A stretch of 7,570 bases of DNA from Neoechinorhynchus agilis (lineage: Eukaryota; Animalia; Acanthocephala). The DNA lies in contig JBMGUZ010000093.1 of assembly GCA_051530055.1 (NCBI GenBank), forward strand, positions 1 to 7,570. Reading direction: 5' to 3'. The notes under the pieces were generated by a model that was not told the origin of the DNA, did no database searches, and was given only the letters and a program-made list of their open reading frames with translations. This document shows positions 1 through 7,570 of the stretch, piece by piece; within the stretch, counting starts at the first letter, position 1; every line of letters begins with the position of its first letter. Made by a program: the position numbers and the translations under genes.

Positions 1-37
1 TGAGCAAACTCATCTAACAGCACAAATACTCGTGTAG

Positions 38-193
38 GCGTTTTGGGTTTACTCCTTCGATAAGGTGATGTACCAAGTTGGAACCGAAGTCGAACTACTT
101 GAAGATGGCCTAAAAGTTATCACATACAATCCTAACTATTATAAACGAAAGCAGAGAAAGTGCAAGAAAAAAAAGAAACGAGGAAAGAAATAA
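38..193 (+). CDS. Probable 3'-terminal coding exon of an upstream gene; unknown product with a Lys-rich C-terminal tail
   Basis: Positions 1-37 look like an intron end (TGAGC..., CTAAC branch-like motif, TGTAG acceptor at 33-37). An open frame follows, AFWVYSFDKVMYQVGTEVELLEDGLKVITYNPNYYKRKQRKCKKKKKRGKK*, with TAA at 191-193 and AATAAA at 260-265. No family recognised. Confidence 0.45.
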   Translation, partial: AFWVYSFDKVMYQVGTEVELLEDGLKVITYNPNYYKRKQRKCKKKKKRGKK

Positions 194-259
194 TCGTTAT
201 TGGTAGACCTTAGTTTACGTAGTTCATTTAGCTCTAGAATTCCTCTTAGAATCCATCAC

Positions 260-265
260 AATAAA
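260..265 (+). promoter_or_regulatory. Candidate polyadenylation signal for the upstream gene
   Basis: AATAAA about 67 nt after the TAA at 191-193. The hexamer is common in AT-rich DNA. Confidence 0.3.
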
Positions 266-1813
266 TTAGTTTTTGCAATTGGCAATGCCGCATGATATTG
301 ACCAAGTGAAAACACCATAAAATAATTAAGCGAACTTGATAATACTTATTTAAAGTAATCGCCATTATCGGAAATGTAAATCGCTATTTCGACATTCTAT
401 TCGCTCTACTTATCACGTTTTATCTTTCTTTATGAAACAATGGTTGACAAAAGTACATGAACTTTAATCTTACGAAAATTTCAGGTGCTGTTTTTATTGT
501 AGAAATTTCTTTTTCTGATTATAACTGACTCGATTCCACTAAATTTTTTTCAGATTTTGTTGTCGTCAAATACATGAACCTGAATTTTAAGTCTTGGCAT
601 TTTCGAAAATGCAATTATCTAAAAAAGGAAATCGATAGTTAAACAGCGTGATTCAGAAACTTAATAGCATCAATAAATTGTCCTTTGTTTTGATGTGATC
701 CAATTTAAGAAATATTCCAACGAGTACCCAAATCATCTTTAAGGTTAATGACAGATACTTCCAATCACTATTACTTGGTTAAAATCCGAAGCGTCGTAAT
801 CGTTATCTTCAATTAATCTGTAAAATTTTCAAACAAATCCGAATATCATAAGAATTATACATACATTCACAATGATTTCTTAGCGAAACAAAGCTCATGA
901 CTTCGTTTAATCATTTTAGATAAAAGCAAATCGAAAAATCGTGGAATTGGGTTGTGACTCTAAACTTTAAGCGCCTCGCGGCGAAAAAATGCAATTTAAG
1001 TCACTTGAGTCTCCTGTTGTAGACGCTGCTGGCAATATAATCAAGCATTCCCCCAACCAAAATTCTTTAAGTTTTTGGGTTTTTTACTGAAAAAACTGGA
1101 AAAATGAAAAGTCACTACTGAATTGCACTTGTTGTTAGGAATGATTATTAAATTAAACTGGAAGAGAGGACTGATAAGGTACTGCAACACTACCATTTAA
1201 TTAAAGAATTTACTATCGCATGAGTTTAGGCCATTAAAGAATTAATGCTTTCAATAAAGTTCAAATTTGCAACGGCTCGCCCATTTAAATACCTGAATCA
1301 TCGCAACGAAATAAATTTATTACTTCATAAAATTTAAGGATTTTGTATTCTTATTGAAGCGGAGTAATTGTCTTGTAGCTTCAGAATTAAGCATTCAAGC
1401 AGTAACGAAACAATCATTCTATTACGATTTGTTCCAAGATACAAAAATTTCATTCTGAAAAAATTGAAACACTTAGTTGAAAGAAATTTCGAAAAGCACA
1501 AAAGATCATTTGCGTTCACGGTGAGACGCGTTTTACAAGCAACGACTAAATCATTCCTAGTCAAAACAACTATATTCTTTGTCTTTCTCTATTGTTTCAA
1601 TACTTAAATTATAAATTAGCAAAATACCAGGCCTGCTTTTTGATTGGTGGATCTTAATTTCAATGAGAATAACGAAAATTTCTCATAGGTTATTACTGAA
1701 TAACGAATTTCGAAAAATCAAAGAAAAAGAACTCAAGCAAAAATACTAAATTTATATCAGATTTTGTTCACCTGTGTTAAATCTCTTTTAAAATGACAAC
1801 GATCATAAATATG

Positions 1814-1819
1814 TTTATT
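1814..1819 (-). promoter_or_regulatory. Candidate polyadenylation signal of the C1GALT1-like gene
   Basis: AATAAA on the - strand 10 nt after the TAA stop at 1832-1830. Confidence 0.45.
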
Positions 1820-1829
1820 AATAAAAATT

Positions 1830-2767
1830 TTACTGACAAAAGGCATCAATTAGTTGTTTGTAATTAAGCATATCCTCTGGCGAAACATAGTGGAACGAAA
1901 TTACGTTCTTTGTGCAGAAACCAGCTCCCTAAAATTAGATAATAGGTGCAAATTATTTATGTATCATTCTCTACGAACCGTTTTGATTGCAGTACGATTC
2001 ATTTGAAACATCCAGTCAGGAATTGTATTGTTCATGAAACGTTGCAGTGAAAGTGGATGGAAGAGAAAAGATCCGTTTTCCTCGACAGCATTTCCAAAAG
2101 GCACATCAGAACTATTGAGGCAAAACGAGAACGCAAGATCCTCTGCACCTGTTTCATGTCCTTCCAAGGTACACCATTTATTAGTTCTAAATTGAACTTT
2201 TCCCAGGGCGGCTCTACTGATCACATATCCGGCACCCCCACTAAAATGGGTTTTAAACCTGTATCCATATGCGATTGGCTCAGATGAATTTTTAACAGAT
2301 AGAAATTTTTCAAGATTCGCCGTGTGAATAAATGTGTCATCATCCGCTTTAAGAATCCACGGGCACTGGTCCTTTAAATTGTCTCGAATGTATTCCATTC
2401 CCATCAATGTTCTCTCATACAGATATTGATGATCTGTGTGCTGGGAGTTAAGGAAGATAACATCTTCGTTCTTGTGTGCAACTTGTTGAATCTCGTTAAG
2501 ACTTGGACCAATGACCAAAAGTGGTTTGCATTCCTTTGCCCATGCTTCGTAAGTACTATTAAATTTCTTGAACTCTTTTGGATTAACCGTCAAAATGCAG
2601 CAAAACGTGAATCCTTGTGTTGGTATCAGAATTTTAGGAAAATCACGAATAGTTACTTTTAAATCGAACCAATAAACAAGCGCCGAGAAGATCGTTAGTG
2701 CTGCAGCGGCTAAACAAGCTACTTTTGTTCGTCGATAATTGATTTTATACGAGAGGGTGTTAAACAT
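1830..2767 (-). CDS. C1GALT1: Glycoprotein-N-acetylgalactosamine 3-beta-galactosyltransferase 1-like (GT31, T-synthase-like), 2 exons: 2767-1979 and 1928-1830, 295 aa
   Basis: Type II membrane N-terminus (VACLAAAALTIFSALVYWF) and C1GALT1-family motifs FCCILT, WAKEC, WILKADDDTF (DxD), SGGAGYVISRAAL, EDLAFSFCL, FHP. A 50-bp phase-0 intron (1978-1929, GTTCGT...CTAATTTTAG) joins a last exon GAGFCTKNVISFHYVSPEDMLNYKQLIDAFCQ*, which carries the family SFHY motif. The first real ATG is at 2767; the ORF track's 2776 start is a TTG. Ortholog versus paralog status is not resolved. Confidence 0.9.
1929..1978 (-). other. Spliceosomal intron (50 bp) of the C1GALT1-like gene
   Basis: GTTCGT donor, CTAAT branch-like motif, TTTTAG acceptor. 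Removing it restores the conserved ISFHY C-terminus in frame. Confidence 0.85.
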
Positions 2768-3396
2768 TGTTACCAACTCGTATCAAAATACCTGAACTCG
2801 GCTCTCGTTTAGATTGTTGGTTGCTTACCACTTATTTTATGCTAGACAGAACTATTATAACCGTGTAATATATAATCTGAAATCGGTCGGAGTACCGAAT
2901 TCGTCTATTTAAAACAAGTGAAAAGTAGATACAGGAAAGTAAAATTCTTGCTTTACAAAAGATGACACGAAATTTTTTGCAGGCAGATGTGACTCAAGAT
3001 AACTCTTTAAGTTCAATATTAATAGCTGTTCATCTTATAATCGATTACACGGATATAGTAAATAACATACATCTCGGTGTTGGCCAATAAATAATAATCG
3101 TACCCTTTTTAATCTCTTAAAGTTTAGTTATACATTTCTAAATCGCGCAAATCGATGAAGGTTTTAGATTGCACATGCAGTTTACTTGCACGTCGGCTTC
3201 GCTTTTTAATGAGACATCATCGTCTGCCCGCTATTGAACCTAGCCTCAATTCCTGAGAACATTTTATAGCCTCAATTTTATGAAATAAAATGCTGTAACT
3301 TGCAACACTTTTTAATTGTAAAATATTTCGAAATCAACGCTTAAATATTCATCATGCGAGCAAAATCTATATGCTAACAACATTAAACCTCAATAT

Positions 3397-5045
3397 TCAG
3401 ATGTATTTCTTATGTTTTGAAGAATTCACATAATCTTCTTTTCCTGCATTTTTTGCTCGAACGCATCCATTACCAAACACAAAGTCTTTTCCTTCAATTT
3501 GCGCAACAATCGCTGATAGCTCAAATCTGTATCTTTTCTGCTGCCGTCTGTATTTTACGTATTTGCAGCAAATAATCGATTGTTGTTCCCCATCCAAAGA
3601 ATTATGTACCGAAATATCATCGTCTGAATTTAAGGGATCATCCTCTACGCCATAAGATTCAACCTTACACAAATAGTCCTTAAAAATGTCGTCCGTGTTG
3701 CCCATTGTGAGACATTTCTTCAAGTCTGGGTTGAGACTTTTATCGTTAATTCCACAATCACGAATGATACAATTTACATCGATTCCCTTGTCAATATTTT
3801 CCATTGTTTCAAACTTTGAAACGCTATTTTTACGCTGCTTAAATTCATTGAGATAATGCATAGTTTCTTGTTCATCAAAATCTATATCCTCGTTCATATT
3901 AATTTCTCCTTTCGAACGATTAGTTATTACAGCGCAGAACGGTTCGATCCCTAATTCAACCGAATCTCTATCCTTTGTATTTTTACATTTTGAGTGATCT
4001 ATCTTAGACCGATCCATAGAGGACTTCTCGATACAATCAATATCTACCGTGCTTGAACTTGAAAGATTGTAGATGATTTCACTACTCCGCCTCACATTTC
4101 TATCTAAAAATTCACAATGAATTATGAAAATTCTATCCAAGTTAGTTTTTACCATCGCCATGCGGTGCTCTTTCCTTTCTACAAACGAACGCCTCTTTTT
4201 GGGTATTTAACAATAACATAGAGTCGTCCAGATTGTTCGCTTGGTCAGCCTCATGCTGTTCGCAACAAGGGAATGAATCCTCGAATTTAAAGCACATAAG
4301 CGAATCCATTCGCCTGACTTTTGATTCTAGGCATTCGCAGTTTATCGTCAGGAAGTGTCTGAAATCACCTCTTACCGCTACCATTTACAACGACTTCCTT
4401 TTCCTCGATGTTTTCATCATTTTGAGCATTGTATAACAGTACTGCATCATATATGATGCTCGCTTGATTCCATTCTCTTTCAGGCCAGTAGCCATGTCTG
4501 TTGCCAAGGTTGAGGTGTTGGTGCAGCTCTTCGTGTAATCGCTGATGCATTTTGTTGTGTTCTTGTCCACTGTGATTTCCATTAATATGCGAAAATATAT
4601 TTTGGAAAGAACATTCACAATTCACATTAGACGACTCGCATTCGCTTTTTAAATTCTTAGAAGAGAAGCGTGGACAATCTTCAACTAATAGCAATATTAT
4701 AAGATCTAAAGATGGATATCATTATTCAAATTAACCTTTCACTTTGGCTTCAATTGCGGATTGCTCTGTAAGTTTCACCTGCCATCTCTATTCTTTGGTA
4801 TAGAGGTACTAATTAGAAAACCCGTCTTACCCTAGACACGAGTTTAAGGAGTTCATCGCTGCACACACTTTCTTTACGAAGTATTGAAAGAAGTTGTGAG
4901 ATCAATCCTCGATAAATTCGCCTCTAATGATCTGATTAGTCGATTGGTAGTATCGAGAATGACATACTGTTCTTATCTTGGATTGCTCCATATAAACTCT
5001 CCGACGAAGACCTCTTCGTCCGACCCATTTAACGTCTTTTTTCAT
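3397..5045 (-). CDS. GTF2A1: Divergent transcription initiation factor IIA large subunit (TFIIA alpha/beta, GTF2A1/ALF/TOA1-like), 6 exons: 5045-4968, 4923-4831, 4787-4736, 4684-4376, 4326-4153, 4103-3397; 470 aa
   Basis: The C-terminal block VEDDPLNSDDDIS...QSIICCKYVKYRRQQKRYRFELSAIVAQIEGKDFVF matches the recalled TFIIA beta module (EEEPLNSEDDVS...NVVVCQYDKIHRSKNKWKFHLKDGIMNLNGRDYIF). Spliced exons 2-3 give RRIYRGLISQLLSILRKESVCSDELLKLVSRRWQVKLTEQSAIE, matching the TFIIA alpha module (PKLYRSVIEDVI...EQVLMELKTLWENKLMQSRAVD). Five GT-AG introns (44, 43, 51, 49, 49 bp) all have compatible phases. An alternative start is the ATG at 4991, and intron 3 has an alternative in-frame acceptor at 4706. 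The symbol denotes family; orthology is uncertain. Confidence 0.8.
3400..4103 (-). CDS. Last exon of the TFIIA-L-like gene (acidic linker plus beta-barrel module)
   Basis: TTTTTAG acceptor at 4104 in phase 1; contains PLNSDDD and the CCKYVKYRRQQKRYRF block; TGA at 3399-3397. Confidence 0.85.
4736..4787 (-). CDS. Exon 3 of the TFIIA-L-like gene (W-x-x-K-L motif)
   Basis: 52 nt, flanked by AATAG acceptor and GTTAAT donor; encodes RWQVKLTEQSAIEAKVK, equivalent to the conserved LWENKL. Confidence 0.7.
4831..4923 (-). CDS. Exon 2 of the TFIIA-L-like gene (N-terminal helical alpha module); absent from the ORF track
   Basis: 93 nt, flanked by CATTAG acceptor and GTAAGA donor; encodes RRIYRGLISQLLSILRKESVCSDELLKLVSR. 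Confidence 0.75.
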
Positions 5046-5084
5046 TTCTGTTTGAAATGTTCTAAAAGGACACACATTGAAGGG

Positions 5085-5264
5085 ATGTGGTTAAGATTCC
5101 CTAAAACCCCAAAACAACCCTTAGAACGCCATTCGTTGTGTCATTTTGTAGAGGATACATAAATAACATACTTTATGTGGCATAGATTCGTAAAAACCTC
5201 AAAATAACTCATAGAACGCGATTCGTTATATCATTTTTTAGAGGATGCGCAAATAACAACCTTC
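5085..5264. repeat. Tandem duplication of a 90-bp unit (2 full copies, plus a degenerate partial third to about 5290)
   Basis: 5085-5174 versus 5175-5264 align without gaps at 70/90 identities by hand, e.g. TAGAACGCCATTCGTTGTGTCATTTTGTAGAGGAT vs TAGAACGCGATTCGTTATATCATTTTTTAGAGGAT. Confidence 0.9.
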
Positions 5265-5335
5265 CTATTTGCAATAAATTACGTAAACTCTTTTGTCGAG
5301 CAAATGACGATTTTTTGTTTAATAATATAACTTAC

Positions 5336-5770
5336 ATGATAAAAGTAACGCTTTCTAGCAGTCTTGAACTGTTACTGTCCTGTTTCCCTCTCGTTCGATA
5401 TTCACCTCTTTATCTGCGACAAAGTTTAGACTGTAGAGTATAAAATCTTTGGACCTGTACCACTGTTGGTTGACTCCCAAATCTGTTACATTGAACGGTA
5501 TTTTAACAGCCTCCCAGCTTTAATAAAACATTTAAGAGTACAACGTTTTAAATTATTTTTTGTTAAAATTTTCCCTTTGGTGCACAAGGACATGGACGCT
5601 GTAGTTGTGAAGATTTTGCTATTGACAAAGTGAATAATAAACATAGCTTTTTTTATGAAATTAATCGGCATAATGCGGACTTCATTCATGTAACTGAACG
5701 ATCAAATGAATGTATTTTATTGAACATAATAGAAGGGCACTTAGGAATATGCTTCCCGTATATCATTTAA
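5336..5770 (+). CDS. Speculative small 3-exon gene (5336-5392, 5430-5544, 5589-5770; about 117 aa), unknown function
   Basis: Two overlapping stop-free stretches (5430-5633 and 5567-5770) can be joined by a 44-bp GT-AG intron (5545-5588). A 37-bp intron (5393-5429) links them to an ATG at 5336. No recognisable motif; splice sites are weak. Confidence 0.2.
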
Positions 5771-6159
5771 ATAACGGACACATGAACTCAATTTTTATAT
5801 AACGATCAACATTCTTTAAAGAAATCTACAATTAAAGATCTTTTAATTTTTCACCTCCCATTCATAAAATCCAAGCTACGTCAATGGAGAACAATTCTTT
5901 GATTTCCGTAGCTTAACACCTTTCACACGTCTACCGATTCGATTTCATTGGAAAAACCCATATATATTTTATTTTTTATTTCATAAAATTATCAGCTACG
6001 CTAATACTAATGAAGTGATCCGAGAAATGCATCGATATAAAACCGATCGCGTGAGTAAACATGGTAACCGGGACATCTATTTTATTTACAAATAAAATTA
6101 TCGAATGACTTCTGACCAACCGTTGGAGCGATTGTTAATTATTTATTAGGATCGGCACT

Positions 6160-6403
6160 ATGGAGATTTCATGCAAGATCACATTCGATTAGAACGATAT
6201 TCTCGTAGCCAATAAGTGTAAAAGCTGGGAATTTTATCATTAAGGAGGGTGACGAAGGTGATAGTGAGACCGGACAATGGAGGGAAACAAGGCTAGTTTC
6301 GGCCTCACTATCACCTTCCTTAATGATAACATTCCCAGCTTTCACACTTATTGGTTACGAGAATATCGTTCTAATCGAATGTGATTTTTCATGAAATCTC
6401 CAT
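6160..6403. repeat. Long inverted repeat (fold-back): arms 6160-6274 and 6298-6403, 23-nt loop
   Basis: The reverse complement of the right arm matches the left arm over 106 nt with 7 substitutions and one 9-nt indel (6246-6254 present only in the left arm). Confidence 0.97.
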
Positions 6404-6582
6404 GTCACCACATTTTCCCCGAAATTCGCGATTATTTTCTTTGCGCTTAATTCAAAGTCCAATGACACCCTTTTGTCCGTTCTCTTCTTTGTGAGAGTAA
6501 ACTGGAGGCCTAAGTTCAACACTTCATTTTCCTCACTAGTAAACGACCTCTTCGTTTTGCTAATGATGCCATTCGGTATTGT
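6298..6582 (-). mobile_element. Degenerate Penelope-like retroelement (PLE) ORF fragment from the region N-terminal to the RT domain
   Basis: The - strand frame gives PNGIISKTKRSFTSEENEVLNLGLQFTLT (6561-6499 core), resembling the recalled PLE motif NLS...L(S/T)..E..vL.kGl.F. About 60 codons later, after an in-frame TAA at 6357, it gives VKAGNVIIKEGD; the left-arm copy reads NFIIKEGDEGDS, resembling the PLE IIKPADKGNS motif. No ATG and no RT catalytic motifs are present. Confidence 0.55.
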
Positions 6583-6921
6583 CTAATCCTTCCCTGCTCG
6601 GTCGGATCGTCAATGATTCATCTGAGTCTCTTCGACAATCGCTTGATCAGGTCTTGAGATGCGGTACCGAATGACTAGAGTAACGGGGCGCCAAAAGGAA
6701 GAGCATTTAAAGTTTAAAAAGGTTTTTGAGATAGTTGACCTCGACAGATCATGATTTTTTTGATAAACAAAAATAAACAATAAATCTTTGTTGTTTCCAT
6801 CAAAATTCCAAACAATAAGAAAAACAGATTTGTACGGAAAATGCTTAAAGTTTGATACGAATGTGATTCAAGAATATCTTGCATCTATCCAAAACTCCGA
6901 CAGATTTACCGATAACGTCTA

Positions 6922-7570
6922 ATGAATGCTAGAAAATTCAGAGCATTGGGTATCGCAACTGCAACTTTGTTCTTTGCTACTTCAATTTTAAGTTGGATTT
7001 CAATATGCAGCCATCATACGTGGACACGAGTTCGGGGTACGAATTTCACCATTAGAATCTTCGGCCATTCATCCAGGAATCAGACGTCGCCTCTGCCTCC
7101 GATTTACTTCCCTTTCATTGAAAGTGAGTTTCCTTGTTTCTTTTATAAAATTCCTTTTGTTAGAAAGACTAATAGGCATGTTGCTGGTAATGTGCGCAGG
7201 ATTCGAAACAGCGGCTATTCTCATGGCCGTGTTTCATTTTCTATCCCAAGGACGGCTCCGGATCTTGTGGCTGCAAGTTTCTTCGGTCTTTGGACAAATC
7301 TCTTGTAAGTGTCGCCTACTATTGTAAATATTCTTGATCTTTGTCCTAAGTGACCTATCAACAAGTGGGAATCGGATCGTTTGTTTTCTACGTCAAAGAG
7401 AAGGACCGTCGATTTTGCTATCCATTTTATTTGGTGATTGCAAGCTGCCTTTTTTCGATCTTATCCTTTATATTCTCTCAAACAGCGACATTTATTCTCG
7501 GCACGGAGGTAAAGAAAATATCAGAAGAGTTTTCTGAAACGCTTGTTCCTCCACTGAAATATTTCCTAGA
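6922..7570 (+). CDS. Four-transmembrane protein, claudin/PMP22/EMP superfamily-like; exons 6922-7123, 7164-7304, 7351 to at least 7508 (runs to the window end)
   Basis: Introns 7124-7163 (GTGAGT...TTGTTAG, 40 bp) and 7305-7350 (GTAAGT...CCTAAG, 46 bp), both phase 1, give a continuous frame. TM1 ALGIATATLFFATSILSWISICS is followed by HHTW and sequons NFT and NQT. TM2 is LIGMLLVMCAGFETAAILMAVFHFL and TM3 is RILWLQVSSVFGQISLTYQQVGIGSFVFYV. TM4 FCYPFYLVIASCLFSILSFIF resembles the (F/Y)G(W/Y)SFYL motif. A further intron at 7509-7569 is possible. Confidence 0.7.

Follow-up and report, generated by a model that had tools for sequence, protein, structure and literature searches.

Contig JBMGUZ010000093.1 of the Neoechinorhynchus agilis (Acanthocephala) assembly GCA_051530055.1, analysed here over its entire 7,570 bp (hereafter, the window), carries on its minus strand a six-exon gene, ACOME3_010826. 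The identity of its product as a large subunit of the basal transcription factor TFIIA (TFIIA-L; a GTF2A1/TOA1 homolog) is well supported, and the protein has diverged much further than is usual in the family. The gene is linked to one encoding a similarly diverged protein related to the small, or gamma, subunit of TFIIA. We hold with moderate confidence that the two genes are the sole TFIIA pair of this parasite and that the partners evolve rapidly and in concert, a reading that we slightly favour over one in which they are a linked pair of specialised paralogs.

N. agilis is an eoacanthocephalan parasite of mullets. Its compact and reduced genome (46.2 Mb) contains 13,655 genes annotated with BRAKER using mRNA-seq; gene loss is the dominant trend, and 44.7% of metazoan BUSCOs are missing (PMC12690905). 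RNA-seq data come from 36 males and 30 females (PRJNA1223661). TFIIA is not mentioned in the text of the genome paper.

Structure of the gene

The window consists of AT-rich eukaryotic DNA. In a three-frame translation of the minus strand between positions 3300 and 5200, TFIIA-like peptides change frame from one fragment to the next, and joining the fragments at GT..AG boundaries yields six exons, five introns of 44, 43, 51, 49 and 49 nt (introns 1 to 5, all GT..AG) and a product of 470 residues, with the ATG at 5045-5043 and a TGA stop at 3399-3397 (Table 1). The spliced model is identical (100% identity over 100% of the length) to the NCBI protein KAL7667358.1 (ACOME3_010826), which derives from BRAKER gene prediction guided by mRNA-seq (PMC12690905). 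A sequence-only reading of the window had described a hidden six-exon gene for a highly divergent TFIIA large-subunit paralog; its coordinates, exon count and protein length proved exact, and the gene is confirmed as real. It was hidden with respect to the track of open reading frames, not to GenBank, where the model is already deposited, though as 'hypothetical protein ACOME3_010826 [Neoechinorhynchus agilis]', without a TFIIA name and without a precomputed Pfam hit.

The many TAA and TAG interruptions, together with the TGA stop, had raised the possibility of a ciliate-type genetic code, which was ruled out because the TFIIA-like frames switch and the 43-51-nt GT..AG introns reproduce the deposited model. 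An alternative acceptor for intron 3, which would give a 30-nt intron and a protein of 477 residues, was also rejected; the 51-nt intron fits the GenBank protein. Exon 1 contains an alternative start, M19, that would yield an N-terminus of canonical length.

Two sequence features were observed 5' of the coding region. An acceptor-like CCTTTTAG lies within 5046-5075 on the minus strand, 21 nt 5' of the ATG, and could be a trans-splice site, provided that spliced-leader trans-splicing, known in bdelloid rotifers, also occurs in acanthocephalans. Farther away, 40-225 bp 5' of the ATG (window 5085-5270), a unit of ~91 bp is present in two tandem copies with 69 identical columns (~76%), both of which are kept at the chromosomal locus described below; it may represent a repeated promoter element.

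Homology to the TFIIA large subunit

By sequence comparison, the C-terminal beta module of the protein (residues ~382-458) is significantly TFIIA-like. Residues ~382-448 match human TFIIA-beta (1nvp_C) with an E-value of 1.6e-7, and the same module matches the C-terminus of yeast Toa1 (1nh2_C; E 0.021) and, in hhalign, a profile of 15 TFIIA-L/ALF sequences (probability 97.4%, E 1.5e-11). An exhaustive phmmer search of 1.84e9 representative proteins returned 14 foreign matches at E <= 1e-3, the best of them at 40 bits and all through the beta module. Five belong to clusters named or identifiable as TFIIA-L (spider, Meloidogyne, lamprey, nemertean and one Joint Genome Institute (JGI) record), two are teleost proteins resembling ALF (GTF2A1L), the germ-cell paralog of vertebrates, and two more match those two by sequence. 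All nine matches that are named or otherwise identifiable are thus TFIIA-L or ALF-like, and the remaining five are unnamed and have the C-terminal motif in common. The top match (P0002, 40 bits) is a teleost ALF-like protein; P0002 and a second protein, P0015, had been considered as acanthocephalan or rotifer intermediates, which was rejected, the closest named relative being a fish ALF.

The N-terminal alpha module (residues ~27-73) is weak by sequence and is supported by its position, by the helices predicted with AlphaFold2 and by two introns matched in a leech. Against the canonical N-terminal profile it scores 5.9 bits, a value reached by 2 of 2000 shuffles, and in pairwise comparison the module alone is not significant (-3.1 bits). 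In a MAFFT alignment it occupies the N-terminus, collinear with the family, and has the invariant Tyr (Y30), Trp (W59) and K62; L63 is kept as well, and the F, L, L and K of the family are lost. In the canonical TFIIA-L gene of the leech Helobdella robusta, one phase-0 intron precedes the invariant Tyr by three codons and another precedes the invariant Trp by one, and introns 1 and 2 of the N. agilis gene have exactly the same positions and phase. The exon between them comprises 31 codons in N. agilis and 34 in Helobdella, the difference of three codons corresponding to a gap in the alignment. The first of these intron positions is also present in a genomic open reading frame of another animal (L005).

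AlphaFold2 predicts helices at residues 10-43 and 49-65 (predicted local distance difference test score, pLDDT, 74-80), low-confidence disorder over residues 72-388 (a middle of ~310 residues) and five strands within residues 412-462 (pLDDT 70-83). This predicted succession of helices, disordered middle and strands is the architecture of TFIIA-L. Since disorder covers ~70% of the model, a Foldseek search with the whole of it gave no significant match (best E 0.069); TFIIA large-subunit chains nevertheless account for 11 of the 22 top-ranking matches, none of them significant. The earlier description of a TFIIA large-subunit homolog with both alpha and beta modules is therefore upheld, for the beta module by sequence and for the alpha module by position, predicted helices and intron positions.

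Table 1 Features of the window and their positions. L004 denotes the chromosomal locus.
Feature	Window positions	Strand	Description and basis
TFIIA-L-like coding span (ACOME3_010826)	3397..5045	-	Six exons, 470 aa, span including the stop codon; splice model and identity to KAL7667358.1
Exon 1, residues 1-26	4968..5045	-	Donor GTATGT, phase 0, three codons 5' of the invariant Tyr, as in the Helobdella TFIIA-L gene
Exon 2, residues 27-57, first part of the alpha module (RRIYRGLISQLLSILRK..ELLKLVSR)	4831..4923	-	31 codons; inside predicted helices 10-43 and 49-65
Exon 3, residues 58-74, end of the alpha module (RWQVKLTEQSAIEAKVK)	4736..4787	-	Carries invariant Trp59 and Lys62
Exon 4, non-conserved spacer	4376..4684	-	pLDDT <50; two of the eight residues that differ between the copies
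Exon 5, non-conserved spacer	4153..4326	-	Splice model, copy comparison, predicted structure
Exon 6, spacer, vestigial Taspase-site region (IIRDCG for Q[VL]DG) and whole beta module	3397..4103	-	Splice model, alignment
Beta-module coding part, residues ~385-458 (YGVEDDPLNSDDD...CCKYVKYRRQQKRYRFEL...GKDFVFGNGCVRAKNAGKEDY)	3436..3657	-	E 1.6e-7 to human TFIIA-beta; hhalign E 1.5e-11; five predicted strands, 412-462
TFIIA-gamma-like 3' end, copy of ACOME3_007778, last ~49 codons and stop	44..193	+	L004 14810-15205 (-)
Galactosyl_T/Fringe-like glycosyltransferase gene	1830..2767	-	Between the TFIIA genes, in the duplicated block, not part of TFIIA; L004 ~12264-13066
Block collinear with CM121342.1 (~13.149-13.155 Mb)	44..5645		~98-99% identity by substitutions

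Divergence from the family

The divergence of the N. agilis protein is extreme. Measured over the alpha and beta modules against eight canonical animals, its identity is 22% and 36%, respectively, whereas the canonical animals share 48-68% and 76-84% among themselves, Meloidogyne reaches 51% and 61%, and teleost ALF-like proteins reach 31-40% and 53-57%. Scores on the Pfam family PF03153 follow the same order, with 15.8 bits for N. agilis compared with 234.8 for lamprey, 200.4 for Meloidogyne and 127.7 for the teleost ALF-like protein. Among 27 columns invariant in 15 other TFIIA-L/ALF proteins, 16 are kept and 11 are lost, the terminal Trp included. The heavy substitution of near-invariant positions noted in the sequence-only reading, which cited the peptide CKYVKYRRQQKRYRF (residues 415-429 of the 470-residue protein), is accordingly borne out. 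Only ~115 columns of TFIIA-L can be aligned, and the N. agilis branch is very long.

The protein shares with canonical TFIIA-L (GTF2A1/TfIIA-L/TOA1, PF03153) the N-terminal two-helix module with the invariant Tyr and W..KL, the long disordered spacer and the C-terminal PLNSDDD...C.Y.K..R......F.L....G.D.VF module with its predicted beta strands; the gene shares the two intron positions seen in the leech and occurs in a genome that also holds a TFIIA-gamma-type gene. The basic character of the RSKNKWKF stretch is retained as well (RRQQKRYRF). Unlike canonical proteins, which score 200-235 bits on Pfam, it reads IIRDCGINDKS (RDCG) at the Taspase1 site Q[VL]DG, whose Q, D and G do not vary among the 15 other proteins, and the acidic tract that follows this site in the family is gone. 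Further differences are an unusually Cys-rich spacer and, at the C-terminus, a 6-residue insertion, after which K.xGxAEW is replaced by AKNAGKEDY (GxAEW by AGKEDY), and an 11-residue tail. The N. agilis gene also adjoins a gamma gene, which the TFIIA-L gene of Helobdella does not.

A second copy and a linked gamma-like gene

A second N. agilis protein, KAL7672898.1 (ACOME3_007777, 482 aa), falls into the same 90% identity cluster and is encoded on chromosome CM121342.1 (16.4 Mb). It is 96% identical to ACOME3_010826, with 8 substitutions and a 12-residue indel, and is the only other TFIIA-L-like protein of N. agilis that was found. In the block collinear between contig and chromosome, mismatches amount to ~1% in and around the TFIIA-L-like gene and to ~1.85% downstream of it (60 in ~3,250 aligned bases); when indels are counted as gaps, the downstream half is 94% identical. 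The coding sequences differ by ten substitutions, nine nonsynonymous (changing eight residues) and one synonymous, all of which are located in the spacer. Neither the alpha nor the beta module is altered between the copies, the 36-nt indel is in frame, the reading frame is intact and all splice sites are kept. The nonsynonymous rate is ~0.8%, compared with ~1% in flanks and introns.

The assembly was produced mainly from Oxford Nanopore Technologies and Illumina reads of a pool of ~50 worms and was subsequently treated with purge_dups. Because the worms were pooled and the two copies are nearly identical, the window most likely is an uncollapsed alternative haplotype with structural differences. 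A simple haplotig was rejected, the collinearity being confined to positions 44-5645: the chromosomal locus lacks a match to window 1-43 and ~5650-7570, and three probes taken from window 5881-7050 have no counterpart in the 21.7 kb surrounding the chromosomal gene. The contig may be a haplotype with a structural variant, result from a real segmental duplication or have chimeric ends.

On the chromosome, the next locus tag, ACOME3_007778 (KAL7672899.1, 131 aa), lies 3.1 kb downstream of ACOME3_007777 in convergent orientation and is annotated only as a hypothetical protein. Its product aligns over the full length with human TFIIA-gamma (E 5e-9) and scores 37 bits on TFIIA_gamma_N (PF02268; cut-off 33) and 14 bits on the C-terminal domain (PF02751; cut-off 27), that is, 51 bits in total compared with 75.7 + 66.7 (142) for human gamma. 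It keeps the Tyr and Trp aligned with Y65 and W72 of human gamma, residues that we take to be functionally relevant. The window starts inside the copy of this gene: homology to the chromosome ends at base 44, with an in-frame TAG at 35-37 just upstream. Compared with the respective human subunits, yeast gamma scores 65.6 bits and N. agilis gamma 39.8 bits (ratio 0.61), and the large-subunit beta modules score 51.5 and 33.6 bits (ratio 0.65). By this calibration, both N. agilis subunits have diverged from human further than those of yeast, and they have done so to a proportionate extent. An ancestral adjacency of the two genes in Spiralia is disfavoured, as no gamma gene lies less than 10 kb from the TFIIA-L gene of Helobdella.

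A sole TFIIA pair or specialised paralogs

Several considerations lead us to favour a sole pair of orthologs. Parsimony is one of them, since a single adjacency event suffices, as opposed to two duplications plus adjacency; another is that the partners have diverged proportionally (0.61 for gamma, 0.65 for the beta module). The genome, moreover, is compact and gene-poor, with 44.7% of metazoan BUSCOs missing, and the lineage is a fast one, as is also seen in a GMPPA exon nearby, whose match to human amounts to only 44.8 bits per 101 aa. The intact reading frame in both copies and the confinement of the 8 amino-acid differences to the spacer are consistent with a functional protein. On this reading, the two N. 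agilis subunits would form a heterodimer and bind TBP and DNA, and a canonical copy would be absent from the rest of the genome.

Several observations weigh against this reading. In the published table, BUSCO 606748at33208 ('TFIIA subunit 2') is scored as Complete and single-copy in N. agilis, and the linked gamma, with just 37 + 14 bits on the two gamma domains of Pfam, may fall below the BUSCO cut-off; a second gamma, of canonical type, would then be implied. XPB, TAF2 and a TFIIH subunit are likewise BUSCO-Complete, and the adjacent H2B is canonical, so that the lineage is not uniformly hyper-diverged. The sequence-only reading had regarded equal divergence of the other core factors as an argument against a specialised paralog; such divergence is found, to the same degree, in the gamma-like protein, and this fits the sole co-evolving pair. 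By module identity, the large subunit is more diverged than both the ALF-type germline paralogs and the fast-evolving nematodes. In a search against the Pfam TFIIA family, proposed in the same reading, neither the whole protein (15.8 bits) nor its last 102 residues (25.1 bits) attain the PF03153 gathering score of 36.2, and the chromosomal copy ACOME3_007777 stands at 15.1 bits. A profile search revealed no canonical TFIIA-L or gamma in N. agilis, but it returned only 29 TFIIA-L clusters overall and thus carries no weight. Finally, the stops in the chromosomal copy of a glycosyltransferase gene located between the two TFIIA genes fit a true duplication as well as a haplotype.

A possible, though somewhat less probable, explanation is that ACOME3_007777/010826 and ACOME3_007778 are an alternative TFIIA that exists beside a canonical one and is specialised, for example, for the germline or for a TBP-related factor. 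It extends to both subunits the paralog idea of the sequence-only reading. The Complete score of 'TFIIA subunit 2' in spite of the very weak match of the linked gamma to gamma models speaks for it, as do the other basal factors that pass BUSCO, the ALF-type protein at the top of the database matches and a divergence that exceeds that of teleost ALF-like proteins and fast-evolving nematodes (22%/36% vs 31-40%/53-57% and 51%/61%). There is also precedent in animals. Moonshiner, a germline TFIIA-L paralog of Drosophila that drives transcription of piRNA clusters, combines extreme divergence with retention of the N- and C-terminal TFIIA-L regions and exemplifies a lineage-specific alternative TFIIA; it is a demonstrated germline-restricted paralog, is recruited via Deadlock/Rhino and has TRF2 and the ordinary small subunit as its partners. 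Its likeness to the N. agilis gene is drawn from its description and not from sequence comparison. ALF is another germline TFIIA-L paralog known in animals (PMC5006001). Like the N. agilis protein, it is a diverged TFIIA-L with both modules, and the teleost ALF-like proteins have RF in place of KF and the VFG motif in common with it. However, a Taspase-type QxDG and the terminal GxxEW are still present in ALF, which reaches 128 bits on Pfam, occurs alongside GTF2A1 and pairs with the canonical gamma, whereas the gamma neighbouring the N. agilis gene is itself diverged; furthermore, ALF is vertebrate-specific, and the two therefore have no shared origin. The similarity to ALF consists of a few shared substitutions on long branches. 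Specialised paralogs would also require that both genes were duplicated and, in addition, became adjacent, in a compact, reduced genome of 46 Mb and 13,655 genes in which gene loss dominates, and no canonical TFIIA-L or gamma was seen in N. agilis, albeit in the inadequate profile search mentioned above. The linked gamma itself may or may not satisfy the BUSCO 'TFIIA subunit 2'.

It is improbable that the gene is a decaying relic, that is, a TFIIA-L derivative, drifting or neofunctionalised, that is transcribed and spliced but binds neither gamma nor TBP. The excess of nonsynonymous over synonymous changes (9 vs 1), at a rate of ~0.8% close to the ~1% of flanks and introns, would fit such decay, and so would the loss of 11 of the 27 family-invariant residues, including the terminal Trp, and the failure to reach the Pfam threshold. 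However, both copies have an intact reading frame, even across the in-frame 36-nt indel, and conserved splice sites; the modules do not change between the copies and are predicted to fold confidently, the DNA-facing stretch is still basic, and an intact partner gene is present alongside. A chance resemblance, or an artefact of gene prediction in which unrelated reading-frame fragments were stitched together, is highly implausible: although the alpha module alone is not significant (-3.1 bits; 5.9 bits) and the whole protein is under the Pfam threshold, the C-terminal match is significant in three independent tests, the intron positions are shared with the canonical gene, the model is identical to the RNA-seq-guided BRAKER model, and the same structure is kept in the second copy.

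If the two genes are the sole TFIIA pair of N. agilis, their mode of action can be proposed by analogy with the solved structures of the family. A four-helix bundle would arise from the two N-terminal helices together with the helical domain of the small subunit, ACOME3_007778, and the C-terminal strands, together with those of the small subunit, would form a beta-barrel docking on TBP and upstream DNA, with the basic KYRRQQKRYR stretch supplying contacts to the DNA backbone. The middle of ~310 residues would be a disordered tether that evolves almost neutrally and is nearly unconstrained; having lost the site, it would no longer be cut by Taspase1, and the acidic tract is lost as well. The two subunits would have diverged together as one pair.

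Other features of the contig

The Galactosyl_T/Fringe-like glycosyltransferase gene is intact in the window, whereas its chromosomal copy contains two in-frame stops and ~17 amino-acid changes and is not annotated as a gene. The two copies differ by 21 mismatches per 1000 nt, almost all of them nonsynonymous.

Within the stretch of the contig that has no counterpart at the chromosomal locus lies a long near-perfect inverted repeat (6160-6403), with 93-nt arms that are 94% complementary and a 58-nt loop. As single-stranded DNA it would fold with -99 kcal/mol (z = -21.6 vs shuffles), and it looks like a foldback element, akin to miniature inverted-repeat transposable elements, or a hairpin-RNA locus. 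An Rfam scan of the window, this repeat included, gave no match, and a tandem-repeat scan of the window found nothing. The chromosomal locus has an inverted-repeat element of its own, of ~170 bp (L004 9100-9270), immediately upstream of where the match to the window stops; because it adjoins this point, the breakpoint may be due to insertion or deletion of a mobile element. At the far end of the contig, positions 6922-7570 of the plus strand hold an unannotated multi-exon reading frame that can be joined across GT..AG introns of ~46-60 nt; it encodes at least 163 aa and runs off the contig end. Its product is hydrophobic, has no Pfam match and is probably a multi-pass membrane protein.

Implications

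TFIIA is a universal basal factor of eukaryotes, and within the initiation machinery its two folded modules usually belong to the better conserved parts. In N. agilis, both subunits are further from human than those of yeast, yet they keep the fold signature and are encoded 3 kb apart. New here are the linkage to a gamma-like gene that has diverged equally, the conservation of intron positions and a chromosomal copy that is nearly identical. Should a canonical pair also exist, the genes would represent an alternative basal factor of a new and unusual type and, if the specialised paralogs are real, the first case in which both TFIIA subunits are replaced by dedicated, physically linked paralogs, which might serve transcription in the germline or transcription that depends on a TBP paralog; in the adult parasite, most of the body is given over to producing gametes. 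If, as we slightly favour, these are the sole TFIIA genes of N. agilis, they would constitute a natural experiment on how much drift a functional TFIIA-TBP interface tolerates and would exemplify linked partners that co-evolve in the compacted genome of a parasite, and two 'hypothetical proteins' in GenBank could be given a name.

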